This document shows positions 4,098 through 60,282 of a DNA stretch of 64,000 nucleotides, in pieces. Position 1 is the first letter of the stretch. Each line of letters begins with the position of its first letter. The stretch spans positions 4,030,001 to 4,094,000 of the forward strand of contig OZ281498.1 in the NCBI GenBank assembly GCA_965637545.1, in the 5' to 3' direction. The notes beneath the pieces were generated by a model. It was not told the DNA's origin, did no database searches, and saw only the letters and a list, made by a program, of their open reading frames with translations. Origin of the DNA: Phallusia mammillata (lineage: Eukaryota). Made by a program: the position numbers and the translations under genes.

Positions 4098-7000
4098 ATG
4101 CAAAGTGGAAAAAGGCAGGTTCTTCGAAAGTTTTTCTGGTTTTTCATTGGATACTTTTTTACGTATGGCGCATACTACTCAATTTTACTGCTGCAATCCA
4201 GTATTAACATCAAAGATGGCGTGGGTAAGAAATTATTGAGTTATATCTGAATTTCGATTTTTTGAAATGTTCAGTTTGCGTTAAAAAATATTGTCAGCCA
4301 AATATAAGAAAAAAACAACTATTAAATAAACACCAAATGACTATATAAATAAATATCTTACCGATGTTCACCATGTGGGACAGAGTTAAAAGTCGGGTCG
4401 GGTTCGGGCTTATGATTTTAATAAAAATGGGATTGATTCGGGCTGACTTCACATCCTTTGTCGGTAATAAAAAAATACCCAGCGAAGTAACCTAGTTCTT
4501 GGCTTAACCGAACGTCCAATAGTTCTGAATCGTCATGTTTAAGACATTGTCTATTATTGTCCTTTGTGTATGTCCTGTTTGTTATAGACCTGCCAGTTTT
4601 CGGGCCAACTTTCGGGCCAAACAGCCTTCTTCAACGATTCTGGTCCGGGACGGATTTTGGGCTTGTACAGCTCTTAGCATTACTGATTGTTGAACTTTTG
4701 GACTTTTAATGGATCCTATGAAAAGATCTGCTGATACTTTATTTTCGTTTTATTTTTAATGTTTTATTATTTAAGGTGTTACATCAGCTTCAGTAACATA
4801 CGGCTGCTCAGTCGTTTTCAGTATTTTTCTTGCTCCAATTCTACTTCGTGTATTGGGTGAAAGGTACTCGGCGATTGTGGGCCAAGTCACGTTCTTGATT
4901 TACATATTGGCCAATTTCTATCCAGGTAATGTACATCATCAATAGCTAAAATTTACCAAGATAGTATTTTTGTCATCGTTTGTAGCAGTTGTATTGCATA
5001 TTAAAACGCTGTGTTTCTTTTCTTTCCCTTGTATACAACACAGTATCACGCAGGACATTTTTATAAATTCATGTGCATATGGAGTAACCGCGTACGTGCG
5101 TGTGTGTGCATAGCTACGTCTAAAAGGGAGTCTTTCACTGTCCCTCACATTCTATTTTTTTCCTTTTTTTTTGAACTTATAAATTACTTGCTTACTTAAC
5201 TTATAGTGCCTTTAACTTATTTTCGTTTTTAGAACCCTATATTCTTATCCCTGCTGCGGCACTTGTGGCAGTCGGAGAGGCGACGATGTGGCCAACCTTG
5301 TTATTGTTTACTGTTCACTACGCGCGGTGTTACGCTCGACACGCCAACAAGGACACATCCGCTTACGAAACTATGTTTGTGGGAATTTACTTCAGTGGAT
5401 TTTATCTGAGTCAGGTAGGCTACAATACCGTATCCAAAAACATTTTTCGCTAAGGTTCAAACTATTTTGGGTTCTAAAACTGATTCTTTAATAGTAGGTT
5501 TTAAAAACTGCGTTATGGGATCAAAGATGAGCTATAAATCGTTTCTTTTTTTCTTTTTTTTGAGGAGGAGACAATAACCCTTGCCTCATGTTTACGACAA
5601 TAGTAAGGTAGATCGTGAAGTATAAATTGCCGCTTTTTGTTTTGCAAAAAATCGCATTGTTATTTCAGATATTTGCAAACTTGCTGTCATACGGAATTCT
5701 TTTTGGTGGCAAAAATTTGTTTGGAAATCAAAATCAATCGACAGTCGATTTTTCGCATTGTGGTGCAAATGATTGCCAAGATCCAAACGCCACAAACGAG
5801 AACATTGACATGTATGTGCCGACGTCTCAAATTACTCTTTACTTGGTTTTGGGAGTGATGGCTGGATTGCTTGTTGTGTCAATTATCGTGTATTTGACGA
5901 TGCTGAAAGATATTGATGTTTCTCTTGAAGCTGTTAATCTGGAAACCCAAACTTCAGAAGGTACTTTTCCAAATAAACAACCAATTTAATCTGAGCTTGG
6001 TTTAACGCCTAAAGCATTGCGCGAAAACTTTCTTTCAAAAATTTTGAGCGTGTTTGAGTAACAGCATATCTGTTTGTAAATGTTAATACAAACTGCATAA
6101 GCCGAGTTGCAGGTGAATTGCATTAAATTAAGTTGCGCGTGGGCTTAAAACGTTTGCAATAGACCTTAAATCTATTTCAACAAGGTTGCCGAAGGGTACG
6201 ATAAAAATGTGCAGTTTTGACTTTTTGGATTGTACTTTTAGAAGCGGCGCTAAAGAATCAAGAAACGAAACAAACCAGCGACACAAGATCAGAAAGGGAA
6301 AGAACAAATCCTAACGAAGTTCATTTCAAAACCAAGGTATACCAAATATATTTGGGTTATTCATAATATAATTGTTTCTTAGGAACACTATACACGGACT
6401 TGAAAAGTAATTTAATCATAAACATTACTGCCAAGGTGCTGGTGTATATAGAATACATCGTTCAGACGTTTCAACAATCTTTGTTGTCATCATCAGTGTA
6501 TGTAGTCAATCAAGCTGTAGAACACGGTATTTTTCCTTAGTTTTTCCTTAGTGCTTTATATACCGTGTTCTACAGCTTGATTGACAACCTACACTGATGA
6601 TGACAACAGAAATTGTTGAAACGTCTGAACGATGTATTCTATATACACCAGCACCTTGGCAGTAATGTTTATGATTAATTGTTTCTTGTTTGCAGAACGG
6701 TTTCGCCCCAGTATTGTCCAGCATCAAAGAAACATTTAGTCTCCTATTTCATCCACAACAACTTCTTTTGGCACCGTTTGCTCTGTATAGCGGAATGTAC
6801 GTAGCTTTCATAATGTCTGATATATCCAGAGCTTATGGTTCCTGTCTATTTGGGGTCCAGCAGGTGCGATTGCAGTTTTTTGACAAACATTATTTATTAT
6901 AGTGACAAACTTTTTTCTTGAAATAGATCGGACTTAATATGGCATTACATAGCGCGGCGGGTGGCATATGGTCAATGCTGGCCAGTTCGTTGTCCAGTCG

Positions 7001-7614
7001 ATATGGTCGAAGAGTGACTATTATGCTAGGTTTTGGAATCGACTTGTCATGTTGGCTGTTTCTTCTCTTTTGGCAACCATCAAGCCAAAATTTAGGTTGG
7101 ACTTATGCCATATACGTTACAACAGCCTTTGCCAGCATTACTTGGATAACAACAATCAGCGGTAAGAACCACTTATGCGATTTCGCGCTTATAGTTAACG
7201 TAAGAACACAGCAAAATTATGATATTGTTTTAGATACATACGTTGATTACTTTTCGAAAAAGCGAGACATCGCCTTTGTGGTCTGGAACTTGTGGATGAT
7301 GGTGGGAATAGCGGTGCAGTTTGGTTGGAGCACAAGTCTTTGTGTCAGAACAAAGATATATGTGCAAATTGGAATCCTGTGTTTTTCAACTTTAACCTAC
7401 GGTGAGCAACGTCGAATCGTGTTCTGTGTTTTTAGGTATTGTCGTTGCAGATTTACTAGATAAGCTTATAGGAACCAATGAACAATAAGTTTTTTTTTAC
7501 AAAAATTACCTTGTTCAAGGTCATTTTGTGTATTATAAAACCTTTTTATGACACTGGTGTTTGTACGCAGGTGTTGCCGATTACATTCAGAGGAATAAGG
7601 ACAAACATGGCTGA
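4098..7614 (+). CDS. UNC93A: UNC-93-like MFS protein, paralog A (9 exons, 486 aa)
   Basis: Exons 4098-4224, 4776-4925, 5233-5414, 5669-5960, 6242-6336, 6696-6863, 6927-7161, 7234-7401, 7571-7614 total 1461 nt, all with GT-AG introns. Motifs: LQSSINIKDGVG, GEATMWP, CGANDCQDP, SRAYGSCLFGVQQ, WNLW..VG..VQFGWSTSLCVRTK. Confidence 0.88.
4381..4675 (+). mobile_element. CAGAGTT-terminated MITE (hAT-like, CGGG-rich subterminal repeats) in intron 1 of A
   Basis: It starts cagagttaaaagtcgggtcgggttcgggc. The internal sequence is shared with 11676-13117 and 31813-32096 and with intron 1 of B and C. The right end is degenerate. Confidence 0.5.
6465..6496 (-). ncRNA. Minimal hammerhead ribozyme core (antisense arm)
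   Basis: The minus strand reads CUGAUGA-U-GACAA-caaaga-UUGUU-GAAAC-GUC. It has conserved core boxes, a 5-bp stem II and a palindromic ACGU stem III. Stem I is weak. Confidence 0.5.
6594..6625 (+). ncRNA. Minimal hammerhead ribozyme core (sense to the gene A pre-mRNA)
   Basis: CUGAUGA (6594-6600), U, GACAA-cagaaa-UUGUU, GAAAC, GUC (6623-6625). This matches the minimal dimer-type hammerheads of Penelope-like elements. Only about 2 bp of stem I is obvious. Confidence 0.55.
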
Positions 7615-8891: not shown

Positions 8892-9263
8892 ATGGGCGAA
8901 CTTCAACAACAATCGAGCATTCAGACCTATAGAAAAACAATTGTATGGAAGTTTCTATTGTTTTCAAGTGGAACATTTCTAACTTTTGCGGCATACAGTT
9001 CTCTGGTTTACCTGCAGTCAAGCATCAACATCAAAGGAGGAGTTGTTAATTTTACTTGTGTTTGGATATTACTTTGAATTAAACTTAAAAAGTTATAATT
9101 TTGTGGGATTCAAGATGCAGCTTCCGTTATAGCGACTAACGCCACCGCAGCCGTTTTGGAATAATCTTTACCCCAGTTCTCATACCAGTTTTTGTTGCAA
9201 AGATCTTTGTGATCACCTCTCAAACAACGCATCTTTTCTTTGTGCTTGTCAACATCTACCCAG
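8892..9263 (+). pseudogene. Truncated D-type UNC93-like pseudogene (exons 1-2 only)
   Basis: Exon 1 reads MGELQQQ...LQSSINIKGGV with the donor mutated GT>TT (9046). Exon 2 (9115-9263) is 149 nt versus 150 in D, has a 1-bp deletion, and its donor is GT>GC. No downstream D-type exons follow. Confidence 0.85.
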
Positions 9264-10215: not shown

Positions 10216-10330
10216 CTATGTACGGCGAATACTTTCCAAACAATCAGCAAGTTACTTTTTCGGCTCTTGGTGTTTGAGCTGTTCGAATTAGTTGGAATAC
10301 AAGTCCTTTGTCGGCATTAGGATCTACTTG
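10216..10330 (+). pseudogene. Decayed UNC93-like penultimate-exon relic
   Basis: After a tcag acceptor it reads AMYGEYFPNNQQVTFS..GV*AVRISWNTS (TGA at 10275), compared with AMYGEYFPKEQKLAF..QFGWSTS in intact paralogs. Confidence 0.6.
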
Positions 10331-11119
10331 CAGCTTTTGTGCCTTTCGATGTTAAGCTACAGAAAGTTGTAATTATCCAGGACTGATAGTATCACTCAGA
10401 ATTACATATAACGTAGATTTTATGTTATTATACACAAACTATATAAAAATTAAAAAAAAACAGAGCTGCTAAAGTTCATTGTTTAAGAATTAGGACAGAA
10501 GCTTTGTTAATATATTTTAAGGGTTGTTGCACAGATTTCTATAGTAGAATGTTTAACGGTTAACTGGCTGCCCTGTCCTCGAAACAGCAAAATACTGCCG
10601 TATGATTTGACTTTTTCAGATCTGCGAACCGGGACGAGAACAGTCATCCCCCTCCACTTCCGCACCGAACAACATCGGCGATCCACGTCATCGATCTTAC
10701 GAAACGTTCGTCGCTGTCAATAACCGTCCTCGAGACACCCGGGTCTGCCTATGGGATTACAGAAAACGTTTCGAGGAACCGCGCTGGTGTTTTGTTTAGG
10801 CGGGTTTCATTTGGCCAGCAGCCAATTTCATTTTGGCCGGCAACCGACTGTACCCCGCCAGGTTCGTGCGGTCGGTTGCGATCCTGCGGCAGCACACACC
10901 CAGAATGCTCCAAGCACCATTCAAATAACGGGACACTTGACTCGATAACCAATGGGTTTTTTTCGGTGTTCTTGCTGTTTTTAAGAAACTGTTTATCAAT
11001 GACAATTGGATAAAGTGACAATACAAATAAAATTTGGACAAAAAGTTTGTGAGATTTTTTTTTAATTGGAATTTGCTTAGATGTTTCAAGCTACATGTTT
11101 CTTCTTTTGCGGAAACCTT

Positions 11120-11510
11120 CAAACGAAAATCTTGGCGTTGTGATTGTAAGGCGACAATGCGGCCGCGCATTTATGTGTTCAGTTCACACTGTGCACGATG
11201 CTGAACGGAAAGCGGAATCACAGGCACCAATGTCTGTGAAACAATGTTCGTTGGATACTTGCTTGTGGGGTTTCAATTTAGTCAGGTTTGGTTAAACTAA
11301 TACGAAAGGAACAAACTATAGTCCCAAAAGTTTTGAACTTATGATTTTTACCAAATGTTAACGCAGATTTTTGCCAACTTGCTGCGGGATTCTCTTCGGT
11401 GAAAAAAACATGAAAGCAGTTAATCACAATCACAGCCTTCGTGATTTTTCGTACTGCGGAAGACGCTTTTGTCAAAATCCAATTTTCACGCTACAAAACA
11501 TTCATCAGGC
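11120..11510 (+). pseudogene. Old A-related UNC93-like relic (exons 3-4)
   Basis: Exon 3 reads KATMRP..SHCARC*..ETMFVGYLLVGFQFSQ|gt (11285). Exon 4 from 11367 reads IFANLL[5-nt deletion]GILFGEKN...DFSYCGRRFCQNP. Confidence 0.75.
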
Positions 11511-11771
11511 TATTGAACTGGATGCTGTTTTATTTCGTTTTTACTTGTTTTAGACATTACTACACCGAAAAGTGTTTAAGGTACACAAACATTTCATTTC
11601 TCACTTGTACTTACTGTTATATTCCAAGTTGCCCTCAAACGTTCTGTTTAAGTCATTGTCTATTATTGTCCACTGCAGAGTTGTAAGTCGGGCCGGGCTT
11701 TTCGAGCCTGGTTCGGGCTTGGGTTTCTTAAAAAAATGTGCCTGATTCGGGTGTGACTTTACACTCTATGT

Positions 11772-13223: not shown

Positions 13224-13333
13224 GCGTTACATCAGCTTTAGTAACGTATGGCTGCTCAGTCGTTTTCACCGTTTTTCTTACTTCGATTCTACTTCGTGTA
13301 TTGGAAGAAACGTACTCGGAGATTGTGGCCAAG
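13224..13333 (+). pseudogene. Truncated A-type exon 2 (partial fourth copy; exon 1 absent)
   Basis: It follows an A-type intron-1 3' end and reads GVTSALVTYGCSVVFTVFLTSILLRVLEETYSEIV before breaking off just ahead of the inverted unit. Confidence 0.8.
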
Positions 13334-14460
13334 GCTAAAAGCGCTTTTAACTTGTATCAACCAACCAACACAACAGGTTAAGATATTTCACATTTTTGTC
13401 GCAGACTGTAGTATATGCAATACACAATATAATTGCATTCTGTCGTTCAGCTTTTCGTTCTGCTGGATTTGAACGATCAGAATTTAATAAAAATTATACG
13501 TTACCTTAAAATTTAAACATTTAATGTTGACCAGTACAGAGAAAAGATAGGTTATTTGAGAGGTGATCACAGAGATCTTTGCACCCAAAACTGGCATGAG
13601 AACGGGAGTAAAAATTATTCCAAAAATTGCTGCCGTGGCATAAGTCGCAGTAATGGATGCATCTAGAATCCCACAAAATTATAATTTTTGGATTTTAATT
13701 TTCAGGAATTGTTCAATGTCACTTTTATCCAAAAACAATGAGACTCCTCCTTCGATGTTGAAAAAGTTGGAGAATAGGTAGGCAGCAAAAGTTAGAAATA
13801 TTCCACTTGAAAATTGTTACATCTTATTTGCCAGTAATTGCCGATTTCTATTGATTTCCGCTTTTCCTCAGTACAACGTGTGTTTCAATCCATTGCGTTG
13901 TGTGACGTAATAATCGACTGCCAGTTTTGCGTGAGAATAACGCAACGTGGTTTAGTTCTTCTGTCGAGCACGGTGCTCGATATATATGTGTTTAATGACT
14001 CCAAAATGTGAATTACTATAGTCAATGCGAACTTAACTGCAATGACCTAACATGTCATTCGCTTTGTAATAGTTGTACTGTACGTATAGTTGGGTTTAGA
14101 CAAGGTGCTTGAGTTGCATTTTGTTTACGCAGTATTCCTGTTTTCTCCTCACCTGAAGCGTGACTTATTCCTTTACTGCAGGGGTTCCCAACCTGTGGTA
14201 CGCGAAGGTTTTTCCGGTGGTACGCGAGCAGCTTCCGTTTTATCACAAAAACAAAATACAGGTCATGTCAATTGTCATCAAGAAGCACAGTTGCATTGAA
14301 AAGCCGTACAACGTTGTGTGACATTGGGCGTTAATAATGTTGCTCTTGATCTACTGTTTTATAGATTAAGCTACAAATAGCGTTGATGCCGGTTGTAAGC
14401 TAACAATAGATCGGAATAAAATGTTCAATAACAGCTACATTTAAAGAGGTAGTTTATGGG

Positions 14461-14680: not shown

Positions 14681-15010
14681 GTTTATGGGCATGCTTCGTA
14701 GTAGGCTAGTACTATGAAAGTACCTATACTGGTGGTAATGTGATAATGTAGGAACGTGAGCAGCAAAAATACAAGAAACTAAAAAAAAGTTGTAACTAAC
14801 ATTTTGTTACCAACTTTAGACTATCACATTTGTAGGTTTGACTATTATGGTGGGACGTAAACAAAAATTGCATCAAATTTAGTTATGGTGCTTTAGTGTT
14901 ATTTTGGTAGGCCAATATTCTTCTTCTGAATAAAATATGATTCGATCAAATTAGTTGTTCTGCAAGAAGTGGTACGCGTGGCAGTACATAGCGTCCAAGC
15001 AATGATGATT

Positions 15011-15897
15011 GCCCCAGAAAATCGATTTGGGAAACTCCAAACTTGCACTTTCCCAGGTTGATGACAAGGCCATGGTCGGAAAGCTGTTTGAAAAGACGCT
15101 TTAAATGGTCGTAGTGCTCGGAAAGAGACTTGCTGGCGACGAGGATGTCGTCAAGATAGACGAACACAAAGTCCAAAGATTGACATACCGTGTCCATCAG
15201 TCGCTGAAAGGCCTGTGCCGCATTTTTAAGGCCGAAGGGCATGCGAAGGAATTCAAAAAGGCCAAAAGGGGTAATGACCGCGGTTTTCGCGATGTCAACA
15301 GGTGCCACAGGAACCTGGTGGTAGCCACGAACAAGGTCAGTTTTGGAAAAAACGCTAGAACCTGCCAACCGAGCCGAAAAGTCTTGAATGTGAGGAATGG
15401 CGTAACGATCAGGCTGGGTAGCTGCGTTAAGACGGCGGTAATCGCCGCAGGGGCGCCACCCACCGGACGACTTTGAAACCATGTGCAGTGGCGAGGCCCA
15501 TGGACTGGAAGAGCGTCGAATAATGCCCAGTTGCAGCATGTTGTGAAATTCCTTTTTAACGATGCTGAGTTTCTCGGGAGGGAGACGACGAGCGCGAGAG
15601 TGCACTGGTGGGCCGTTAGTGGGAATGAAATGCTGAACTCCATGCTTTGGAAGCGACTGTGAAAAATTGAAATGCTGAACTCCATGCTTTGGAAGCGACT
15701 GTGGAGTTGTTATTCCTGGGAACTCGGCCAATAGTCGAGCACCAAATGTAGCGAGGTGTTTATTCGAGGTACATCGTAATAGAATAACACAATGTGCGAA
15801 TACGCCGCATAAGACGAGAGTCAGAGAAAGAAGGCAATCTGTCCGGTTCGCTGTAGTATGAAGGCACACGATAACGGTAGTGAGAGAGGACGCTACA
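15011..15897 (-). mobile_element. Ty3/Gypsy fragment: LTR and PBS remnant fused directly to the reverse transcriptase domain
   Basis: RT motifs [48 protein letters not shown] and [13 protein letters not shown] are present. gag, protease, RNase H and integrase are absent. Confidence 0.9.
15747..15897 (-). repeat. 151-bp LTR
   Basis: Termini are TGTAGCG...CGCTACA (7-bp inverted), AATAAA lies just before the 3' end, and TTTGGTG (PBS start) follows. Confidence 0.75.
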
Positions 15898-17355
15898 ATA
15901 CTATGTATATAGTATCATTGGTCCAACTGGTACGAGATCATAAAAAGGTTGGGAAACCCTGCTTTGCTGTCATCCAACATATTGGTAAGAACTGTGTGTG
16001 ACGTCATAAATGCGAGTTGTGGTGATATATGTTATTGTATGTTTAGGTGTGTACCAGTAATTGCTGCGAGTTGAATACCCGTGCTATTTACTTTATCCGG
16101 TTACCACAACAGTTGGTAAGATTTGTGCTGTATTTCTGCATTTAAAGCGCAGTGTGCCAATGTCATGCTTTATGCATAAACCGTATCCTATTTGTCGTCT
16201 CCTACCGTCCTCTTTGTCCTGCATTCAAAGAATTCGCCTAATAAGATCAGCAAAACCTATCTGTGTGGGCTGCTTGTTGGAGGCTATTAGGAATCGCGTT
16301 TTAATTCTCTCCTCGTGTGGCGTTCCGCGCTATAACCGGGTCGCGTTCACGGGACGTAAACAATAGAAACTTCCATACAATTATTTTTCTAATAGTCTGA
16401 ATGCTCGGTTGTTTTAGAAGTTTGCCCATTTTGCAAAATGTTACGTAAAAGTTCCGAATCACCTTTGGTCGGACACCAGTGTGTTGCTTTTTAGCCTAAA
16501 AAACAAACAAACAGATAATTTATGTGTACTTTATTTCAGGGCAATCATACACGACACTGTACATGTGCTAACTCTGCGACTTAAGCTCTTTACCTTCCCA
16601 CTTGTTTCGCCTAAACATCCATCCTAATGGCAGTTCATCATTTTTTATCATATTGTAACAAAAAAACGGTTTTTCCCTTATTCCCTATTACAGCACAAAT
16701 CCATTCTCACACAGTTATCGACTATGTACAATTGACCAATATTTGTAAAGCAAAGGTTTGCTGCATTCTGTATAATTTGTATTTACACAGTGCCTCCATC
16801 AAACACTGTTTCAATCGTTACGTTTCTTCAGTACAGGGACATACGAATAGTATTCGCTTAAGAACATCACAAGTTGCATTTTTCAAGGAATTTAAGGATA
16901 TTCATATTATACTGCTTCTGAAAATATCGTTTGTTTGCAGTTGCAATTTCCTTTAGGAGGCTAAATACTATGTGACATAATTGATAGCAAATTGCATGGT
17001 GGCCCTTTTTTGTATGCAAAACACTATTAAAACTATTTAGCGAAATACGCTTGGCAGACAACATTTCCCAGAAAATATTTTTTTATTTGAATATACATTA
17101 CAGCTGCAAATGCACAACTTGTAAACTTATTTTTACAGACGTGTAATACACTATACATAGTGCACGGTATTATTCTGGGCAGAAGGTTGCCATTTTGAAC
17201 AAAGCCGTCACCATGATGAAAAAAAAGTTGGAAAGGCAATTTTGCAGCAAAGGTCGAACTAGTTCTTTTTTAAAGTTTCCAAAGATACTGTTTTCGACCG
17301 CGCAGTAATATTTTGCAGTCGTTTTTATATCTTCTTTTCCATGCTTGATATTTTT

Positions 17356-28400: not shown

Positions 28401-28605
28401 AGACTGATTCAAATTGTGTTTTTCGTGTTGTCATTGCAGCGTTACCTAAAATAGTAATTAACAAGCAAGATACCTTTTTTACCGAAATTGCCTTGTTCAA
28501 GGTTTGTTTTGTGAACTCAAAGACTAAACATACCTTTTTTGACATTTGTGTTTGTACGCAGGTGTTGCCGATTACATTCAGAAGAATAAGGCGAAATGTG
28601 GCTAA
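25490..28605 (+). CDS. UNC93A: UNC-93-like MFS protein, paralog C (9 exons, 486 aa)
   Basis: Exons 25490-25616, 25980-26129, 26535-26716, 26939-27230, 27456-27550, 27606-27773, 27844-28078, 28157-28324, 28562-28605 total 1461 nt. Confidence 0.88.
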
Positions 28606-39191: not shown

Positions 39192-39234
39192 ACGGGAGAA
39201 AAATAATAAATTGTAAAGAATCAACTTGTCACAT

Positions 39235-43800: not shown

Positions 43801-46003
43801 CATTTTCATTTGGGAACCACACATTCTAAGCTATGAACTAAAATACATTGTGTGTAAAGGAAAACTTCTTTACCTCTTAAATGGTGTACCAGAAGTAAAT
43901 TAACTGCAGATTTCCCTGGACACTTAGCTAAATTTGGTACATACACAATGATGGATGATGGATCTTTGCAACAATAAAATTGTTGCTATTAACCTTGTTC
44001 ATGTATTCAGATGGTAATTTCATAATATTTTCTAGAGCAATGAAGTGGCAAACAGCAATATTATGGAAAAAGAAGGATTCTTGGGATGCATTAAAAACTT
44101 CACAAGCAAAGAATTGTTTATTAAAGCCTTTGTGACTGACAGGCATCCACAAATCATTAAATACATTAGTGAAGAATCGTCAGAAACAAAACATTATGTT
44201 TGGCATGTAGCTACAATTATGATAGAAATAAAAGATGAGCATACACCAGTATATTTGTGTTTATGGTTTTGAATTCAGAAATCCAAAAGAAACTGACAGC
44301 ACTTTCTAACAAAGCCTATTGCAAAGAGTTGGGACCTTGGGTGAAAAGCATATGCAACCACATGTATTGTTGTTCAGCAACGTCACAAGGGAATTCACAA
44401 CTTATAGTTGACAAGTGGCTGTCAGTCTGGCAACGTAACTCTGAAGTCTTCCCCAGCACCATTCAACAAATTTTCTGTAGGCAGTATATCTGTAACGCAT
44501 AGAGGTTGCTGGTTGCATATAGCATGTTAGTAGTTAGTACAGTAAAACTTACTCGTGACGGGTGTTAATTACCCTCATCATGATTTCCCAATTGACGTTT
44601 AAATCGATAACGTGCTGATTCTAATACATACACGTTGAGACATATAGATTCAAATCCAGGATATGCTTTCATACAAAGCAGATTCGACTCAGAATATTCG
44701 TTGAACTTGGCTAACTGCTGTTGCACTTACTAATTTCATGGCAGCAAACACATGATTTTCTCTCCTCCATTATCACATAGTTAGTACATAAACACCTGCA
44801 ATAATTCTGTTACGTGGAAAATACCTTTTGTCAACAACAAAACACCTACCTTTTTAAGCAAACAGTTGTTATTTATTGCTTAACTATCAACTACGTATAC
44901 TATACGTTAATTTTATCCGTTGTAAACAATAAAAAAATGTACGCATCAAAGCTAAAACAACAGCTGACCAACGCCATTGTTAGAAGTTGGTACGAGGTGA
45001 CGTAACAATCGCTGCTACATATCAAACCAAGGTGTCGCTCGAGAGCTCATTGTTTGATTGAATATCTCGAAAACGAGAAATCATAGGCCAAAACAAATTA
45101 GTGATTCGGAATCCCTGATTTTTGGCAATTCTAAATATCTTAAATGTAGAAAAAGTCACATCGTCGCTGCCGGGGCCCTTTAATAAGAACCAACACTATA
45201 CAAAATAGTTAACAAAAGTTGCATGCCGTCATTAATAACTCACCACCAACAACCAAGTGCGTCCGCAAACTACTGATTCAATTTTTGTCACAGTGTTACA
45301 GTTTGTTACAGTCATAAATTGTATCCTCTTCAGGTTGGCCTCTGCACCGCCATTTTTGCCGCCTCCGGTGCGATATCAGCCTTTGCGACGGGAAAGCTGT
45401 CCAGTCGCTTTGGTCGAAACTTGCTCATCGCTGCTGGGCTTATTGCGGACATTGGTGGATACATGATTGCGTTGTTCTGGATTCCGAACGAAACAAATCT
45501 TTGGGTGGTGTACGCGTTATTTGTATTAGGTGGAATTGCGGACGGAATTTGGGAGCCACTATTGTTAGGTAAGTGGCTGAGATATTTGCAGAATCTAAGC
45601 AACATTTATTCTTACTGCATACCTTGTGTGTGGCAAATAGACGCATTGTGTATATTCAATACTCAACCGTACCGAATTTTTAGAAATACATTCCAAGTCG
45701 TTTCCCAACACAGAAGAAATTGCCTTTGTGGTTTGGAACCTCTGGGGTGTTGTGGGACTAACAATACAGTTTGCTTGGAGCACCAGCGTGTGTGTGCGAG
45801 ATAAAATATACATTCAGCTCGGATTGCTCGGTTTTTCTATCATATTATATTGTACGTGCACCGCTTGGTTGGTTTTGTTTTGGTTTTGTTTTGGAAAATA
45901 TTATATTTGATTTAAAACTACTTTTTCAGACGTTGACGAACTGGCTTACAAAAGTAAAAACAAAGTTCCTGAAGAAAAATCTTTCCAAGGAACTTATCTG
46001 TAA
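40880..46003 (+). CDS. UNC93A: UNC-93-like MFS protein, paralog F (8 exons, 494 aa; 2.8-kb intron 5 contains a Kolobok element)
   Basis: Exons 40880-41042, 41163-41312, 41626-41807, 41974-42318, 42379-42546, 45334-45568, 45684-45851, 45930-46003 total 1485 nt. Confidence 0.86.
43168..45179 (+). mobile_element. Kolobok-superfamily non-autonomous element, copy 1
   Basis: TTAA TSDs at 43164 and 45180, and TIRs AGAGCCCCGGCA / TGCCGGGGCCCT (11/12). Fragments of THAP (MPAVCSLYGC, GPTKYSVLCSLHF) and transposase (MEKEGF..FVTDRHPQIIKY, WHVA, PWVKSICNHMY) lie on the plus strand, and a Cys-rich ORF2 relic on the minus strand. Confidence 0.85.
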
Positions 46004-46498: not shown

Positions 46499-48636
46499 AT
46501 GACTTTAGACAGACCGTTCATTCTGTATCTGTTTGGAGTGTTTTTGATATATTGCTCTTCAATAGGAGTATACACCTTAGTATCTAGCCTCAACGTGGAC
46601 GAAGGTCTAGGTACGTAGCGTTAGGCATAACAGGTCGATGTACGGTAGGGTTCTTATGACCTTGCTTTATTCACACAGGAACCTGGTCCTTGGCTCTCGC
46701 CTATGCAACATCTCTCGTAGCTGCAACACTGTCACCAGTCATTGGTCATATATTTGGATGTAAAAAGTTGTTAGTAATAGCCGAAGTCGGTTGGCTGCTT
46801 TTTATATTGGGAAACGCATATACATGTGAGTTTGGCTGAGCATATGTCACTTTAGGCCTAACGTAAGCTAATTTCCGCCTTTTCGCGGTGATTGTAGACT
46901 GTTATCCACTTCAGCATTTCTTTTTGCTTTGTAGCTTACTTCACAGTGCTTCCAGGCGGATTTTTTCTTGGACTTGCTGAGGCATGGGGTTGGACGGCTA
47001 TGCCTATTTTAAACACGTACTTTGCCGAAAAACGAGCAGGCCCTCAAAATAAAGAGAAACTTATTCGGTATTATACGGGATATTACTATGCAATAATACA
47101 AGGCAGTGCGGTAGGTTGCCATCAGTCAGTGTGGCGTTAGTTAAACAATAACATACTAAGGTTTCCTTGCGTAACAGATAGTTGGAAACGGCATCAGTTT
47201 TGCGGTTTTGTACATCGACAGAACGTTAGCTGGAAGACACAACACTACTAATGCCACAGAACGAACAATCGACTACAGCATATGTGGCGCCAACGACTGT
47301 CAAATCGCGAATATCACTAATGCTAATATGGAACAATACGAACCCTCGTATCCTGCAACACGATACATTCTGATAGCAACGTTCAGTGTACTTACCCTTA
47401 TCGGCTTATTTGTACATATTTTATACTTGCCGACCGATGCAAGTTGGAATATTGCCGGTAGGGAGCAGGTGGCAACTAATTCCCCACCAGAGACGCGCAA
47501 TGTTGACGCAATTCAACTGGTGCAAGTTCCGCCAACGGACGAAACCAACAGAGATGACGAAGAATTGGAGAGTTTCATCGAAAGTTCTGTTCCCATGGTC
47601 GGAGTAGAAGCACTCCACTGTGAGAATTTACAGAAACAGGTTTTTATCGTATGTTTTCGTCCTTGCTGGATTGATGCCGCAAACGCATTTTTGTTTTGCA
47701 GGTTAAGCTGACAACAGTTTTCCTCACTACATTAAAAGCAACCTTAAAAATTTCATTCAAACCAAAACATTTGCTGGTGGTTTTACTACCTATATACAAC
47801 GGTATGACGATCAGTTACTGCCTTGGGGAACTCACTCGCGCATACTCTTCTTGCATGTTAGGAGTGGACAAGGTTCAAACATGTTTAACGTTTTTACACA
47901 AATTCTTTTTCATAATTAAAATTTCACGTAGGTCGGCGTGTGTGTGATGCTGTACGCTTTTGCTGACTGCGTTTTTTCGCTCATTGCTGGAAAACTAGGT
48001 GGAAAATTGGGAAGAAACTTACCATATGTTATTGCGTTCATCATCGACATCTCATTGTACATATTCACGTTACACTGGGAAGTAGATGTTGGCAATGCAC
48101 AACTCGTGTACGTCATTTTCTTGATGTTTGGTTGCTCGGATGGCCTGTGGCAAACCCTTATAACAGGTATAACAAAACAAAAATTACCAATTTTGTTACT
48201 TGATTTTCACCTGAGGTTTTCACATGCAAAAAGTGCAAACATTTTTGCTAGTTTGGTGATCAACACTTTTTGAAACCTATTAATATAAACTTTCAGCAAT
48301 GTACGGTGAGTATTTCCCAAAGGAACAGAAGCTCGCGTTTAACTTGTGGAATGTGGTGGCAAATGTTGGCTTTTTAATTCAATACTCAATCAGCACTGCT
48401 CTCTGCGTACGTTCCAAAATTATAATACAGATAACACTTTTGTGTGTGGCTGTTTGTGCATACGGTAAGTCAAAACATTCACGTCGATTTTAAATAAAAA
48501 TACAATACAAAACAGAAACAAGCATTTTTGCAATGCAGGTGTATCACAAGTTATTTACTACCCGGAAGAACTTGCTCAAAACCGAAGAAAAGTCAAGGAT
48601 GTGGTGAATAACGTCACTGGTCGTTTGACGTCTTGA
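46499..48636 (+). CDS. UNC93A: UNC-93-like MFS protein, paralog G (8 exons, 508 aa)
   Basis: Exons 46499-46610, 46679-46825, 46935-47110, 47178-47597, 47702-47872, 47932-48166, 48297-48464, 48539-48636 total 1527 nt. Motifs: SSLNVDEGLGTWSLA, CGANDCQIANIT, GELTRAYSSCMLGVDK. The exon 4 donor is the least certain boundary. Confidence 0.84.
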
Positions 48637-51672: not shown

Positions 51673-53953
51673 ATGACTGTGGACGCACCGTTCGTTATTT
51701 TTCTCACAGGATTTTTTCTTGCTTGTTGTTCGACACAAGGAGTATACTCGTTGGTGTCAAGTTTGAACGTTGGTTCAGGACTATAGGTACTGTTTGTGCG
51801 TTTTGATACAACCACAGATAATTAACTTTTTGATTTTTGCGCAGGAACTTGGTCTTTAGCTCTTGCCTATGGAACTTCGCTTGCAGCTGCGCCATTGACA
51901 CCCGTTCTGGGTTGTATGTTCAGATGCAAGAAATTACAACTGGTCGCTGAAACAGCCTGGCTGTTGTTCATATTAGGAAATGCATACACATGTAAACACT
52001 GTGTAATTGGCCAATTTATACAACAATGTATGAACGACGAAAAAATAGAAAATATTATTTTTAAAATATTATTTTACAGATAGCAATATATATGTTTTGT
52101 GCAAAACGTACTGCATATGTAATCAATATTACCAATCATTAGTCATTCTCGAGATATGGAGACCTGTAGAGTTTGTTGCCAACGTAAAGAATGACCTCAA
52201 TAACATCCGCCCCTTTTAAATTGCAGCGTTTTACGCAGTGCTGCCAGCTGGATTATTTCTCGGAATCGGGGAAGCGTTTGGTTGGACTGCGACGCTCATT
52301 ATCACAACGTATTTTGCAGAACAGCAGGCCGGTGGCAAAGCTCACGCCAGAAACATAAAGAAACGCATTCGATACTATACTGGATTCTACTTTGGAGCTT
52401 TGCAAGCTGGTGTTGTGAGTGCACAATATTACGATAAGCAGTTTTTGTTGCTGTTTGGCGGAGACTGCATGTATATTTTGCAGGTTTTTGGAAACGCTAT
52501 CAGTTTTGCAGTATTACACATTGAAAGATTATTGTCAGACACACATATCGTGTCGAATTCCCCAAAAAGTTCGGTAAGCTACCGTGTTTGCGGTGCCAAC
52601 GATTGTCAAATTGCAAATGTAACCGACGCAAATGAACAACAATACAAGCCGGTTTTTCCAGCAACGCGGTATATCATCACGGCTTTATACGGTTTATTAA
52701 TGATGGGTGCTATTTTGTTGCACAGTTTAAAGTTGCCTACAGATATTCACTGGAATGCAACACTAGTACAACAAAACGTCGAAAACGAAGTTTCATTACA
52801 TGTTGAAGAACAAGAAACAAACCATTGTTCCAAAGCATTAAAAGAGTCGTTTTCTGACATGGGAAGTGATAAGATTGTCTTGAAAAGTTCCTTCAACAAA
52901 GACAACGATGAAATAATTTTTAATGACACACCGCAAGCAAAGGTACTTAACCGGGCATTTCTTATTGGCAACAATGTGCAAATCCAATATGTAAACAAAG
53001 CAAGAAATATGTCCATTTGTTGCTATACAGTGCTATAAGAATCTACGAATTAATTTTGTTCCGCGGTTAATTGTTTATATACTTACAGTTTCAACATTCG
53101 TCGCAAGTATCCCCCTTCAAAGTATTTACATCTACACTTAAGGCGACATTGCGGATATCTTTTACACAGAAACATCTTCTTGTCGTGTTGCTTCCAATAT
53201 ACAACAGCATGACTATAGGTTACGTCAACGGGGAACTCACACGAGCTTATTCATCGTGCATACTCGGAGTGGACAAGGTTAAAAACCAGTCGATTTTACT
53301 CCGTACATACCACAATAATATTTCGTTTTTGTGAAATATACTTTTTTAGATTGGGGTGTGCATGATGATATATGCAGTTACTAATTGCATCTTCTCTATT
53401 ATTATTGGAAAAATGGCCGGAAAATTTGGAAAAAATCTTCCATACTTCATTGCCTTTGTCATAGATTTGGCCTTGTACGTCTTCAGCTTGTGTTGGCAAG
53501 TTAACGCAAACAACGCATGGCTTGTATACGTTTTGTTTTTGTTGTTTGGCTGCTCAAACGGAATATGGCAAACTTTGAATGCAGGTATCCAAAAATTCCT
53601 TTTGCAAAACCTGGCTTAATATGCCGTTAAACTCTTTAACGCATTGTTTGTAGCTTTATACGGAGAATACTTTATCGAGGAACAAAAACTTGCATACAAT
53701 TTATGGAATGTGATAATGAACTTTGGTTTTCTTGTTCAATTTTCAATAAGCACAGCTCTGTGTGTTTATTTAAAAATTTACGTCCAAATAACAATCCTTT
53801 GTTCGGCTATTTTTACATACGGTAAGAATTTGGATGTATCGCATCATAACTGCAGAAAAAAGAATAAAGGTTTTTTTCGTTTTTTGAAAGATAGGGTTGT
53901 CACAGTTTATTTACTATCCTGGAGACGTTTGCAAGATTTATCAACGAACTTGA
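51673..53953 (+). pseudogene. UNC93A: UNC-93-like paralog H: intact except for a 2-bp TA duplication making TAG at the end of exon 1 (may be rescued by a cryptic donor)
   Basis: Exon 1 (51673-51786) is 114 nt versus 112 in G and I, and ends CTA TAG|gt. Exons 51845-51991, 52227-52414, 52484-52942, 53089-53277, 53350-53584, 53654-53821, 53895-53953 are open. The protein would be 518 aa if corrected. Confidence 0.7.
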
Positions 53954-54892: not shown

Positions 54893-57331
54893 AGAGCCCC
54901 GGCACCGTTGTTATTTATCGTATTTTTATAAACACGATTTCAGGTTTTAAACCTCAAAAATCGAAGTTACTAGTCAGATATTTACGTTTTAAATCTAAAA
55001 ACACTGACACCTTGCGGATATTTTGTCACTTAGCTCAAACGTCATGTGACGTCACCTCGTACCAACGTGGTTTGGAGCGTGTTTGTAGTCGGTGGTTGTT
55101 AACGTTCTGCGACGCCAATTACGTTAGTCAGTTTAGGTATTATGGTGTTTAAATGTTTTCATTTTTACACTCAAGTGTGCAAAAATGCCTGCAGTGTGTT
55201 CTTTGTATGGTTGCAATTCGAGAGGAAATCGAAAAGGCCAGCAATATGACACTTTTTCGCTTTCCAAATGTTACATCGCTTTGTACATATGTTTATGTTT
55301 TTTGTGTTTCCCGCCAGTAGTCTTGATTCCTGTGTATGACGCAGTATTGTGCCACCTGCAACATTGTTTGTCACACTATCGGTGATTGTGATGTCACAAC
55401 TTTGGCATTGTTTATTGGTATCACGTCTTGTAAGCGAGACCGCCTCGTGTTTATTAGTGACTGGAACTTACAGCGTCTGCATGCGTTTTTTACCTGGTCA
55501 ATTATGTTTGTTTTTTGTGTAACGAACAGGAAAATTATGCTGTTTAGAAACTGAATCGTCCAATGTTTGACTTGAATATTTAGTGATCGGTAAGCATATG
55601 TTAAACCTTTTGGATTTGAATTTATGTGAAACCTGTATTCAGACGTGAATTCCGCCGTCGTCCAACCCGTGTTATTCTGAACCGAACTGTGTTATTTCGG
55701 TAAGATTATTGCTGCTTAAGTTTGCCGTCCGTCACTAGTGTGATTAAGTGATGTTTATGTGTGATGTTATTAGATGCTGTGTTTACACACCTTCTACTGA
55801 TCGCTTGCATTTAAACGACTCCAGTCCTCTAATAGTTTGGTAAGCGTAAATGTCATTGAAATTCGACTTCTGTTGCCTTGTCTTAATTTGAACATTTTTT
55901 GTAGAAACCGCCTTTTGACCCTTGTACTCGCCGTGCTGCTATACTCTCGAGCGCCATCTATCGGCCATATTGTAGAATAAAAGAGTTCGTTATATAGCTC
56001 TTGGCGTCTTGGAGTTAGAGCGCAAGGAAAGGCGCGTTAAAGACAGTTTTAGGAACACAAGCGATCGCCCCTGCTGTGCTGTCTGGAGGCGCATGGAGTC
56101 ACGCCTTCCGATAACAAAAGACAGCGCAACACCAAATATAAAGCGATTGCGGTCAGCTTGGATTAAATTTGTTAACGTGAAGAGAAAATGAAAGGGACCA
56201 ACGAAATACAGTGTTCTTTGTAGCCTACATTTCACAGATGAATGCTTCACAAATAAAATGCAGTATGACAGGGGTATGGCAAAAGTTCTGGTGTTAAAGC
56301 CAAATGCCATTCCATGTATTCATGAGAACAGTATTCTTCAGCAAGAAATGCCTTTGAGAGCAACTGCATGAAAAGTGAGCATACACCTTGAGCATACACC
56401 AGTATATTTGTTTTTATGGTTTTAAATTTAGGAATCTAAAAGAAACTGACAGCACTTTTTAACAAAGCATGTTGCTAAGAGTTGGGACCTTGGGTGAAAA
56501 GCTTATGCAACCACATGTATTGTTGTGCAGCAACGTCACAAGGGAATTCACAACTTATAGTTGACAAGTGGCTGTCAGTCTGGCAACGTAACTCTGAAGT
56601 CTTCCCCAGCACCATTCAACAAATTTTCTGTAGGCAGTATATCTGTAAAGCCTGAATACATAGAGGTTGCTGGTGGCATATTGCATGTTAGTAGTTAGTA
56701 CAGTAAAACTTACTCGTGACGGGTGTTACCTTCATCATGATTTCCGAATTGACGTTGAAATCGATAACATGCTGCTTCTAATACATACACGTTGAGACAT
56801 ATCTTCAAATCCAGGATGTGCATTTATACAAAGCAGATTTGACTCAGAATATTCGTTGAACTTGGCTAACTGCTGTTGCACTTACTAATTTCATGGCAGC
56901 AAACACATGATTTTCTCTCCTCCATTATCGCATAGTTGGTAAATAAACACCTACAATAATTCTGTTACGTGAAAAATACCTTTTGTCAACAACAAAACAC
57001 CTACCTGTTTAAGCAAACAGTTGTTATTTATTGCTTAACTGTCAACTAAGTATCTACGTTAATTTTATCAGTTGTAAACAATAAAAAAATGTACGCATCA
57101 AAGGTAAAACAACAGCTGACCTGCGCCATTGTTAGAAGTTGGTACGAGGTGACGTAACAATCGCTGCTACATATCAAACCAAGGTGTCGCTCGAGAGCTC
57201 ATTGTTTGATTGAATATCTCAAAAACGACAAATCATAGGACAAAAAAAATTAGTGATTCGGAATCCCTGAATTATGGCAATTCTAAATATCTTAAATGTA
57301 GAAAAAGTCACATCGCCGCTGCCGGGGCCCT
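54893..57331 (+). mobile_element. Kolobok-superfamily non-autonomous element, copy 2
   Basis: TTAA TSDs at 54889 and 57332, with the same TIRs as copy 1. The THAP domain is more complete (LFRFP..KRLRSAWIKFVN..PTKYSVLCSLHFTDECF..LKPNAIP), and the central transposase segment is deleted. Confidence 0.85.
55269..56116 (+). mobile_element. Probable solo LTR (848 bp) inserted in the THAP coding region of Kolobok copy 2
   Basis: Termini are TGTTA...TAACA, with AATAAA at about 55976. Removing it rejoins FRFP to KDSATPNIKRLRSAW. The TSD is unclear because the flanks are A-rich. Confidence 0.6.
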
Positions 57332-58211
57332 TTAATAAATCTAAGGTAACAACTAACAATTAATTTGGATTACCCACAATACATGAAAATAAAAAGACAT
57401 GAAAAAAACACAGAAAACGGTTGTGGTGCTTGAGGTATCAATTTCCGTGTAAAATAACCCAATTACCACACTATGATGGAAAACGTTGGACAACAACGCG
57501 ACTTGCCATAGTGATTTGGACCTTCGTATAATTTCTATGCGAATGCGAAAACCAGACGAAAGAAAAAAAGGCAAAACCGGTGAAGCGTGCTCGTCGTTCG
57601 TCGTTGTTTAATCGTCGTTAGCAGCCGGAGGGCTGAAGCCAGTCAGCCTAGATTAGAAACAGCAACTTTAGCTGCAATGACCATCAGAATACGTGTTTGT
57701 AAAAAAGTGTTTTAGGATGAATGTGTACCTGTTTAAGATTAAACGGAGACTATAGAAAATGCGCTGGTAAGCCTACTACTATTGATCTCAAAAGCATGTA
57801 GGATATATCAGGAACATCAACTTGTGATAATGCATCCTCACAGTATGTTTGTTTAGTACTTTGTTTAAACAGCCAATTAACTCACGTGGGCAAATCCATA
57901 CTGCCAGCGGCATCACACAAATTTATGTGGTAAGCTATAACAGGTAATAGCATTGCACATCTTTATCGTTGAACGGTATGAAGTGAACAGTCAATGAAAA
58001 AGGTAAAACCAACCAAGCCAAATTCGGCAGTAAATGAAAGTACTGGTAATTAGTTTCGTCTGCCAAACAGTCATAACAAAATGGTGCGCGGTTTAGCTTA
58101 TGACTGTCAATTGATTATTACATCAATTGACGATCACATTGCATAAAGTTTTTCTTCTTATTTTGTCAGATATTACTTCGAACAGATTCGGCTTCTCTGT
58201 TACACTTATCA

Positions 58212-60282
58212 ATGGCTATTGACGTACCCTTTGTTCTTTTTCTATCCGGAGTTTTATTGTGTGGCTGCTCGAGTCTTGGAGTTTATAGTTTGGTGTCAAG
58301 CCTCAATGTCGATGAAGGACTGGGTACCTAACGCTGGTAACTTCCTGTGTTCTGTATTGTTGACAATCTGTACTGTTTACCAGGAACCTGGTCACTGGCG
58401 CTTGCTTATGGGACGTCATTGCTTATTGCAAATTTGACACCTGTGATTGGATGCTATTTCGGTTGCAAGAAGTTGCTGACAATTGCCGAGATCAGCTGGC
58501 TTCTGTTCATACTGGGAAACATGTATACATGTAAGTATGTTTTAAAGTGGTAACAAAGTTAATGAAATTGTTTGAATTCTATTTGACTTTTTTATGATAA
58601 ACTTTATTTGCACAACAGCGTACTACACGGTGCTACCAGCCGGCTTTTTCCTCGGTTGTGGAGAAGCATTTGGTTGGACAGCGCTTCCCATCATCACTAC
58701 GTACTTCGGCAAACGACGGGCCAGTGCTGACCCCGCTAATGTGGAGAAACATGTCCGATATTATACTGGATACTACTTTGGAGTTCTTCAGGGTAGCATT
58801 GTAAGAAACGTTGACAAAAATCATAAAAGAGATTGTTTGTTGGAATGTACGATATTTCTTTTGTTCATTGCAGGTTGTAGGAAATGCTATTAATTTTGCG
58901 ATCCTGCATATCGATAGATCACTTGCCGATGCCAATACATCGCACAATACGACCAAAAGAAACATTGACTACAGCGTTTGCGGTGCCAACGACTGTCAAA
59001 TTGGAAACATTACCGGTGCAAATATGGAACAATACACTCCAGCGTTCCCAATAACGCGATATGCCCTAATTGCAGTCTACGCAGTTTTAATGATTTGCTG
59101 TATTATATTGCACAGTATAGTTTTGCCTAATGACATTAACTGGAACTTGACTGTTCCAAAATCTAGTGCCAACCAAGAAATTGGTACTGCCCCCCTTGAA
59201 ATAGACTTGGTTGATCGAGATTCAAAGGGCACTGCCGCTGAAACGAACAATCGTAAGATCGTAGAAGAAAAGAGCTTGATAAAAGACTCAAGCGAAAAAG
59301 AAGAAACGGTATTGAAAATGCTTTTAATGTAGGTACAAAAACCAACTTAATGAACCTTTCATTGCAGGTTTCACTCAAAAACGTATTTATGACAACAATT
59401 AAGGCCACAATAAAAATTGCATTTAATCCAAAGCATTTGCTTGTGGTTTTGCTTGCAATTTACAACGGCATGACGATTGGTTTCGTCGTAGGAGAACTTA
59501 CAAGAGCCTATGCGTCATGCATTTTAAGTGTGGGCAAGGTAGGACATTGTTTTCAGGTCTTTATGGCATTAAGTATACATCAAATACAAATTACTTTGTT
59601 ATTTGAAAACAGGTGGGAGTTTGCATCATGCTGTTTTCAACTGCTGACTGCGTTTTTTCACTGATTGCTGGGAAAATGGCCGGAAAATTAGGAAGGAACT
59701 TGCCATATTTTATTGCTTTCGTTATTGATATCGGTTTGTATGTGTTTAGCATACATTGGGAGTTTAACGCGGGGAACGAATGGCTTGTTTACATCATATT
59801 TTTGATGTTCGGTTGTTCGGATGGAATATGGCAAACCCTTGTCACAGGTGCACGTTTTGCAGAACATAGAACTGTTTCCGTATTTTGACATTAACTTCGA
59901 TTTCTTTTTACTCTAGGAATGCAGAACATGTAAGCATGTACTAACATTGTAAATGACTTTTTATTTTTAGCCATGTACGGGGAATATTTCGTCGAGGAAC
60001 AGCAACTGGCGTTAAACCTGTGGAATGTGGTCTTAAACTTTGGTTTCCTAATACAATACGCTATGAGCACAGCTTTTTGTGTTTACACAAAATTATACAT
60101 CCAGATTACTGTTTTATGTGTAGCGGTTGGCACTTACGGTAAGTTGAAACTTTGAAGTATTCTTATGTAGCTTTCTAATAAACTTGCAAATTTCAGCAAT
60201 TTCGCAGTTCATATACTACCCTCCGGAAACTTGTAGAGACAGCGAAGTAACGAACGACCACGACGAAATTCCAAAGCTCTAA
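58212..60282 (+). CDS. UNC93A: UNC-93-like MFS protein, paralog I (8 exons, 511 aa)
   Basis: Exons 58212-58323, 58384-58530, 58619-58800, 58874-59308, 59368-59538, 59613-59847, 59971-60138, 60197-60282 total 1536 nt. Confidence 0.87.

Follow-up and report, generated by a model that had tools for sequence, protein, structure and literature searches.

The window analysed here, a 64,000-nt stretch of Phallusia mammillata DNA (contig OZ281498.1, positions 4,030,001 to 4,094,000 of the forward strand), carries nine tandem eight-exon genes, A to I, of which eight are intact and one is broken (Table 1). Repeated exon families were found across the window by clustering six-frame open reading frames, and the genes were obtained by splice-aware modelling. 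The initial annotation had reported eight intact genes, one nearly intact gene and at least six relics within 56 kb. This inventory was reproduced almost to the base, with six relic loci, and the ends given for it (4098 and 60282) coincide with the start codon (ATG) of gene A and the stop codon of gene I. The array exceeds the window, with about 20 copies in 168 kb (C5:3994253-4162554), of which the genes described here form the middle part, and at least 36 copies of the family were counted genome-wide.

Table 1. Genes, relics and mobile elements of the array (window positions; genes on the minus strand are given in order of transcription)
Feature	Position	Strand	Description	Exons
Gene A	4098-7614	+	449 aa, intact, clade X, A/B/C branch	4098-4224, 4776-4925, 5233-5414, 5669-5960, 6712-6863, 6927-7161, 7234-7401, 7571-7614
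Relic R1	8892-9262	+	D-like exons 1 and 2 only	
Relic R2	11062-11502	+	scrambled pieces of exons 6, 3, 4; 43-56% identity	
Relic R3	13226-13333	+	piece of C-like exon 2	
Relic R4	13520-13813	-	D-like exons 1 and 2, inverted	
Retroelement reverse-transcriptase ORF	14946-15869	-	RVT_1, E 5.8e-31; between relics and gene B	
Relic R5	16352-16429	-	piece of D-like exon 1	
Gene B	21037-17356	-	449 aa, intact, inverted copy	21037-20911, 20369-20220, 19859-19678, 18993-18702, 18240-18089, 18024-17790, 17723-17556, 17399-17356
Gene C	25490-28605	+	449 aa, intact	25490-25616, 25980-26129, 26535-26716, 26939-27230, 27622-27773, 27844-28078, 28157-28324, 28562-28605
Gene D	30463-33460	+	505 aa, intact, clade X, D/E/F branch	30463-30616, 30707-30856, 31111-31292, 31352-31717, 32138-32305, 32573-32807, 33131-33298, 33366-33460
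Gene E	35255-37862	+	494 aa, intact	35255-35414, 35480-35629, 35884-36065, 36256-36588, 36647-36814, 36988-37222, 37544-37711, 37774-37862
Relic R6	39237-40239	+	E/F-like exons 2-4, degraded	
Gene F	40880-46003	+	494 aa, intact	40880-41042, 41163-41312, 41626-41807, 41974-42318, 42379-42546, 45334-45568, 45684-45851, 45930-46003
Interspersed repeat	43201-45186	.	inside gene F intron 5; 94-96% identical to 54909-57338 (H-I spacer)	
Gene G	46499-48636	+	525 aa, intact, clade Y	46499-46610, 46679-46825, 46935-47110, 47178-47648, 47702-47872, 47932-48166, 48297-48464, 48539-48636
Gene H	51673-53953	+	nearly intact; 518 aa if two inserted bases skipped	
Gene I	58212-60282	+	511 aa, intact	58212-58323, 58384-58530, 58619-58800, 58874-59308, 59368-59538, 59613-59847, 59971-60138, 60197-60282

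Each of the nine genes has seven introns, all modelled with GT-AG borders; the terminal exons of A to H were placed by homology to gene I only, and in gene G the boundary between exons 4 and 5 is the most doubtful. In every copy exon 6 measures 235 nt and exon 7 measures 168 nt, as had been noted earlier. Exon 2 has a length of 150 nt or 147 nt, exon 3 one of 176-188 nt, and the ranges of exons 1, 4 and 5 are 112-163, 292-471 and 152-189 nt. Over 483 residues the gene I model agrees at every position (100% identity) with a public protein titled 'unc-93 homolog A-like [Phallusia mammillata]' (P0033; CAB3267516.1 / A0A6F9DX18). Its terminal exon ends at 60282, and it is the only window gene with a counterpart among the public protein records. 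The reading frame is open from ATG to stop in all copies but H, where a 2-nt 'TA' insertion (51784-51785) brings a TAG into frame where exon 1 ends, the remainder being open. This lesion could be an assembly error; gene H is probably a young pseudogene.

Pairwise amino-acid identity is 94-95% within A/B/C, 54-71% within D/E/F and 56-62% within G/H/I, and falls to 29-46% between these groups. Birth and death, proposed for the array at the outset, is borne out by the intact copies, the freshly broken gene H and the relics lying side by side, and by purifying selection on the young duplicates (dN/dS in young pairs 0.17-0.22 or, at the widest, 0.17-0.25; omega 0.17-0.20 at dS 0.11-0.16 in the A/B/C pairs). 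The array probably grew through successive local duplications, in which some copies were inverted and some arose as blocks, with a probable contribution from gene conversion, and copies are lost through small lesions and decay into exon relics, purifying selection maintaining those that are retained. It illustrates the turnover of such arrays through inversions, the duplication of blocks, probably gene conversion, and the insertion of transposons. The length of gene F intron 5 (2787 nt) is due to the insertion of the interspersed repeat. A reverse-transcriptase ORF also lies within the array, outside the UNC93A-like family.

Membership of the UNC-93 family, claimed by the initial annotation, is supported by the names of the relatives, by the Pfam domain of the closest of them and by the best structure match. 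In a phmmer search of 1.84 billion proteins with the C-terminal half as query, 79 relatives were found at E<=1e-3, and no named non-ascidian protein was among them. Thirty of the looked-up clusters carry a name, in every case that of an ascidian 'unc-93 homolog A-like' protein; this 'A-like' label rests on NCBI names. A word search from a Styela protein returned only ascidians, one hemichordate and three unnamed records. The Pfam domain UNC-93 (PF05978, gathering cut-off 22.9 bits) was matched full-length and above cut-off by the closest Ciona, Clavelina and Styela proteins, to which the spliced models align with 260-462 bits (local phmmer). The gene I product itself falls just under the cut-off with a colinear match (20.7 bits, E 2.6e-4, 5-373 of 379), same-clade proteins lie above it (P0029, 32.6; P0080, 39.4; P0019, 53.2; P0005, 75.6 bits), and genes A to H, scanned exon by exon, gave weak matches. 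An ESM look-alike search pointed to a UNC-93 cluster (score 0.98). The motifs C-G-x-x-D-C, in the TM5-6 loop, and R..SC, after TM7, are present in all nine window copies and are common to the hemichordate Saccoglossus UNC93A-like protein P0123, in which they read CG..DC and TRxYxSC as in the array proteins. In an alignment of 36 homologues that includes P0123, residues C183, G184, D187, C188, Q189, R338 and C343 are either invariant or conserved in at least 90% of the sequences, and R377 and C464 are invariant.

In place of the three subfamilies described earlier, the tree, which covered proteins of Phallusia, Ciona, Clavelina and Styela, gave two old clades, A-F (X) and G-I (Y), each with further branches beyond the window. 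The ascidian 'protein unc-93 homolog A-like' genes of Ciona intestinalis (XP_078491110.1), Clavelina lepadiformis (XP_076814755.1) and Styela clava (XP_039257985.2) fall in the same two clades, genes A-F grouping with Ciona P0080 and P0009, and genes G-I with Ciona P0101 and Clavelina P0029, P0066 and P0094. Both clades were separately expanded in Phallusia, whose copies form species-specific branches (SH-aLRT 94) and are therefore not one-to-one orthologues. Styela clava has an independent expansion of at least 20 protein clusters. Clavelina and Styela carry tandem pairs or triplets and the closest Ciona gene is single within its 10-kb flanks, whereas both the copy number and the array size of Phallusia are the largest seen. 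The description of the set as undescribed is not supported: gene I was already public and other ascidians have many annotated copies, some of them in tandem, although our literature search found no paper on this expansion. The array is real, but as the expansion of a gene family within one lineage it is fairly ordinary.

The AlphaFold2 model of the gene I product (pLDDT 85.3, pTM 0.85), which DSSP divides into 16 elements, has the helix pattern of a 12-TM MFS protein, and the family proteins are predicted to be 12-helix MFS proteins with a very short N-terminus, TM1 starting at residue 4 in gene I and at residues 4-25 across copies. The model matched 342 PDB structures at E<=0.001, and all 50 of those listed are MFS-type membrane proteins or UNC93B1. 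The best solved match is UNC93B1 (E 8e-10, TM 0.62-0.68, about 12% identity); its chains 7c76_B and 7c77_B score at about 1e-9, against at least 5.6e-7 for VMAT, MFSD2A and SV2A, a margin of about 1000-fold. The extracellular TM5-TM6 loop carries N-x-S/T sequons and the invariant motif C-G-x-x-D-C-Q (CGANDCQ), and a motif-A-like G-x(6)-G-R-N lies in the TM8-TM9 loop. It had been suggested that variable loops mark an immune or environmental-interface family. The variable part proved to be the TM6-TM7 linker, which is cytosolic, disordered and fast-evolving (pLDDT below 50; omega 0.34-0.68), whereas constraint is strongest on the extracellular loop (omega 0.09-0.13), and no region reached omega 1 in the per-region analysis.

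UNC93B1 is a trafficking chaperone of TLRs, and immune families often contain tandem arrays that evolve by birth and death. Since UNC93B1 (PDB 7C76, 7C77) is also the best structural match of the gene I model, the paralogues might be diversified immune-receptor trafficking chaperones, or an immune or environmental recognition family under diversifying selection. We find this scarcely credible. The sequence match, the only one in the PDB with a family meaning, is weak and offset by about 70 residues (query 54-110 to UNC93B1 124-180, E 0.014), and the N-terminal extension of roughly 70 residues seen in UNC93B1 is missing from the array proteins. The 240-Mb genome gave 2 TIR exon matches (a lower bound) against at least 36 family copies. 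Because the extracellular loop is constrained, the variable linker is cytosolic and TIR exons are few, there is no support for an immune or receptor-chaperone role, and the TLR-chaperone proposal finds no footing. The reading as a whole is already largely refuted, and with omega below 1 in every region the array gives no indication of immune-type diversification, nor any grounds for proposing a new component of the immune system. It is also very improbable that most copies are transcriptionally dead or decaying, with the array no more than genomic remains surrounding one or two functional genes. In favour of such decay, the 56 kb contain six relic loci, a copy broken only recently and transposon insertions, but eight of nine copies keep eight open exons with intact splice sites, the young pairs retain the low omega given above, and gene I matches a public protein record.

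UNC-93 of C. elegans, which belongs to the same Pfam family, is an established regulator of the two-pore-domain K+ (K2P) channel SUP-9. The paralogues may likewise be auxiliary or regulatory subunits of K2P channels, their expansion diversifying channel regulation, a reading that we consider unlikely. About 24 K-channel pore-domain exon matches are found in the genome, and CG4928/UNC93A, which is linked to K+ handling, co-localises with TASK1 and shifts membrane potential, sugar or amino-acid transport not being detected (PMC7591606). However, the pore-domain exons are dispersed, with no visible co-expansion or linkage with the array; far fewer channels would have to share at least 36 regulators, which is unparsimonious; and the motif-A-like sequence and conserved core may fit a working MFS cycle. 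Nematode UNC-93 has a long hydrophilic N-terminal extension, in contrast to the early TM1 of the array proteins. UNC93A and Drosophila CG4928, an orphan atypical SLC of MFS type, likewise belong to the UNC-93 family, with 12 TM helices and short termini, although the array proteins are very divergent. To our knowledge, UNC93A remains an orphan MFS-type solute carrier, and we know of no substrate for any UNC93A protein.

Taken on this evidence, the nine genes are very probably the central part of a tandem array of divergent UNC-93-family (UNC93A-like) MFS genes under purifying selection, and the best reading of their function would be that of an orphan solute or ion carrier family, or one of K+-flux regulators. 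We put it at about an even chance that the proteins act as solute or ion carriers of the secretory pathway or plasma membrane; regulation of K+ flux, as by other UNC93A/UNC-93 proteins, appears clearly less probable. Paralogues would then differ between clades mainly in core specificity, and within clades mainly in cytosolic regulation or trafficking. Decidedly unlikely, in our judgement, is a wider proposal, that ascidians repeatedly and independently multiplied a tunicate-restricted, fast-evolving UNC93A-like carrier branch (at least 36 copies in Phallusia, at least 20 in Styela, few in Ciona) to serve a physiology peculiar to ascidians, for instance the handling of ions, metals or acid in the tunic or in blood cells.

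On that wider proposal, the array would be a natural paralogue series for working out the substrate or partner of UNC93A proteins. Among invertebrates, the nearest relatives of the vertebrates have dozens of divergent UNC93A-like copies under purifying selection. These supply many naturally occurring variants that can be expressed and assayed for transport, and their conserved core, invariant extracellular cysteines and free-running cytosolic linker provide comparative material for key residues. For annotation, the tunicate 'unc-93 homolog A-like' genes can be treated as two old clades with species-specific bursts, and gene H is flagged as a probable young pseudogene. The same genome also has, at C2:16.55 Mb, a UNC-93 gene of more canonical type and, at C6:8.91-8.98 Mb, an array that is more like UNC93A.

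Nine tandem UNC93A-like genes (A to I) were modelled in the window, where similarity clustering of all six-frame open stretches revealed seven recurring exon families over 4-60 kb. Frame-keeping GT/AG pairs between adjacent conserved blocks were enumerated and the positions common to paralogues were chosen, which gave nine 8-exon genes, eight on the plus strand and gene B inverted, with every modelled intron being GT-AG. Exons 6 and 7 measured 235 and 168 nt in 9/9 copies, as the initial annotation had stated for its two C-terminal exons, and exon 7 ended in phase 1 at a GT in all nine. Among the nine copies exon 2 took two lengths (150 and 147 nt), exon 3 spanned 176-188 nt and exon 4 spanned 292-471 nt, and the lengths of exons 1 and 5 differed as well. 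Eight of the nine copies were open throughout, and gene H carries, relative to G and I, two extra bases (TA at 51784-51785), generating a stop codon (TAG) where exon 1 ends. The count of eight intact genes and one nearly intact gene that had been read from the sequence was reproduced by these splice-aware models, its limits agreed exactly (the gene A ATG at 4098, the gene I stop ending at 60282), and the at least six relics it had counted correspond to six loci mapped between the genes, each holding one to three degraded exons. Amino acid identity was 94-95% among A/B/C, 54-71% among D/E/F, 56-62% among G/H/I and 29-46% between these groups.

In tblastx comparisons of the 1.6 kb that follow exon 7, no terminal exon conserved between the groups was detected. 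It was located through a public protein, P0033 (CAB3267516.1, UniRef A0A6F9DX18), named "protein unc-93 homolog A-like [Phallusia mammillata]", whose last 28 residues are encoded by the terminal exon of gene I, and then placed by homology in genes A-H (..SQxIYYP.. in G and H; GVADYIQ.NK in A/B/C); these exons close the reading frames of all copies. P0033 was 100% identical to the spliced gene I model over all 483 residues, so the window derives from P. mammillata or an extremely close relative, and the splice choices made for gene I are correct, the uncertain junction of exons 4 and 5 among them.

Several searches place these genes in the UNC-93 family. In an exhaustive HMMER search, a 158-aa query made of gene A exon 6, the in-frame intron and exon 7, the only long contiguous coding stretch, matched 79 proteins at E<=1e-3 among 1.84 billion (best 1.8e-20), and all 30 of the named clusters looked up were ascidian "unc-93 homolog A(-like)" proteins of Ciona, Styela, Clavelina and Phallusia. 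The 272-aa gene H ORF, used as query in a word-index protein search, returned no relatives, a result attributable to the limits of word-index searching and the divergence of the family and not to an absence of relatives. Pfam UNC-93 was passed over the whole length by six of the ten best full-length matches, and also by the closest relatives of both window clades (P0080 of Ciona, 39 bits; P0019, a same-clade relative, 53 bits; P0029 of Clavelina, 33 bits). Whole-protein Pfam and structure tests rest on P0033, the gene I product, which reached 20.7 bits against the 22.9-bit UNC-93 cut-off, was colinear with positions 5-373 of the 379 in the model and passed MFS_1; genes A-H were scanned as single exons, and exon-by-exon scans gave weak UNC-93 and MFS_1 matches. 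The spliced models scored 260-462 bits against ascidian UNC93A-like proteins, and in an ESM look-alike search the C-terminal half led to an UNC-93 cluster with a score of 0.98. An AlphaFold2 model of P0033 built with 36 homologues (pLDDT 85, pTM 0.85) showed the helix pattern expected of an MFS protein with 12 TM helices. Among solved structures UNC93B1 matched this model best (E about 1e-9), with E values roughly a thousand times lower than those of VMAT, MFSD2A and SV2A.

The array extends well beyond the window. Exon 6 alone was found at 35-38 places in the 240-Mb genome, copy counts from genome searches being lower bounds, and about half of these places lie between 4.00 and 4.16 Mb on C5, the sequence carrying the array. 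Mapping of all exons across a 214-kb region that includes the window revealed about 20 copies of gene size, together with relics, over C5:3994253-4162554, the flanking copies being modelled from tblastn pieces only; two further inverted copies lie outside the window. A 200-N assembly gap falls exactly at the expected exon 1 of one inverted E-like copy, U2. The order A/B/C, D/E/F, G/H/I described at the outset held inside the window only; beyond it, copies of E-like, I-like and further types are intermingled.

A maximum-likelihood tree was built from 63 proteins, with a UNC93A-like protein of a hemichordate as root, and it resolved two old clades in place of the three subfamilies originally proposed. 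Clade X comprises A-F and four copies from the flanks, and its neighbours are two Ciona proteins (support 100); clade Y comprises G-I, seven copies from the flanks and proteins of Ciona and Clavelina (support 99). All Phallusia copies of a clade fall on a single branch (SH-aLRT 94), and therefore the bursts are lineage-specific. In Styela, 18 of 20 clusters form a separate radiation of their own, and the loci of the relatives hold one gene in Ciona (within 10 kb flanks), two neighbouring genes in Clavelina and three or more in tandem in Styela.

Purifying selection acts on the young duplicates, with dS of 0.11-0.16 and omega of 0.17-0.20 for the A/B/C pairs, and dS of 0.77 and omega of 0.22 for E/F. 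Between gene I and its neighbour N1, dS was 0.11 in exon 6 and 0.86 in exon 4. Several-fold dS differences between exons of one young pair were seen in A/B/C and in I versus C5:4094151-4096055, and this unevenness within the same pair suggests gene conversion within the array.

It had been argued that constant transmembrane cores with variable loops would mark an immune or environmental-interface family, a view that the distribution of constraint does not support. When exon 4 of the young I-like trio was split by region, the extracellular TM5-TM6 loop, which carries N-x-S/T sequons and an invariant C-G-x-x-D-C-Q, was the most constrained part (omega 0.09-0.13), and the fast part was the cytosolic TM6-TM7 linker (omega 0.34-0.68), which is also the disordered stretch of the P0033 model (residues 242-290, pLDDT <50); no omega above 1 was found. 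Four cysteines predicted to face outward (C183, C188, C343 and C464) and the G-R-N turn that follows TM8 were invariant or nearly so across the 36 homologues. This distribution is the one expected of a membrane protein that is conserved and still at work, with a linker free to vary; it is not the one expected of a recognition surface shaped by diversifying selection.

UNC93A is an orphan. The best reading of the array is a family of putative solute or ion carriers of the secretory pathway or plasma membrane, which we hold with about even confidence, or, with less confidence, of putative regulators of K+ flux; paralogues of different clades would differ in the core and those within a clade in the cytosolic linker and tails. 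The fly homolog CG4928 carried no sugars or amino acids, is required for renal K+ handling and membrane potential, and sits near TASK1 (PMC7591606). K-channel pore exons are dispersed in this genome and did not expand together with the array. The initial annotation had also raised TLR chaperoning in the manner of UNC93B1, which is unlikely because TIR exons gave only two matches genome-wide, a lower bound, and the window family lacks the roughly 70 N-terminal residues of UNC93B1. The remaining probability is spread over rivals to these two readings. This is a known family with a known style of evolution, and the suggestion that the set was undescribed is not supported: gene I, at least, has a public entry, and public databases annotate part of the set. 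No paper describing an ascidian UNC93 expansion was found in the literature searched.

Features in and around the array; positions without a prefix are those of the window, and C2, C5 and C6 are sequences of the same genome
Feature	Position	Strand	Evidence or remark
341-aa ORF	38-1063	+	no Pfam family
Long inverted repeat or hairpin	6367-6748		intron 4 of gene A
Reverse-transcriptase ORF of retroelement	14946-15869	-	RVT_1, E 5.8e-31
Interspersed repeat, two copies, 2-2.4 kb	43201-45186 and 54909-57338		94-96% identical
Gene I terminal exon	60197-60282	+	
Inverted E-like copy U2	C5:4006430-4009013		
Assembly gap	C5:4009107-4009306		200 N
Canonical UNC-93 gene	C2:16551856-16567823		per-exon Pfam 50-60 bits
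Second UNC-93 array	C6:8914289-8983467		eight Pfam UNC-93 N-terminal exon matches in 70 kb

Other elements were also mapped. No Rfam family was present in the window at gathering scores, and the hairpin in gene A gave no hammerhead ribozyme in Rfam at gathering scores or E<=1, the only matches being sub-threshold miRNA-like hairpins. The reverse-transcriptase ORF lies inside the array and adjoins the inverted gene B and several relics, and the first copy of the interspersed repeat sits in intron 5 of gene F, stretching it to 2787 nt. The ESM look-alikes of the 341-aa ORF were unnamed, mostly arthropod clusters, one of them with DUF4218 (transposase-associated), and this ORF is probably transposon-derived. 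The canonical gene on C2 is distinct from the arrays, and a public Phallusia "unc-93 homolog A" protein, P0122, maps neither to it nor to the C5 array. In the second array, one translated piece (C6:8983225-8983467) was closer in look to canonical UNC93A than the window genes are.
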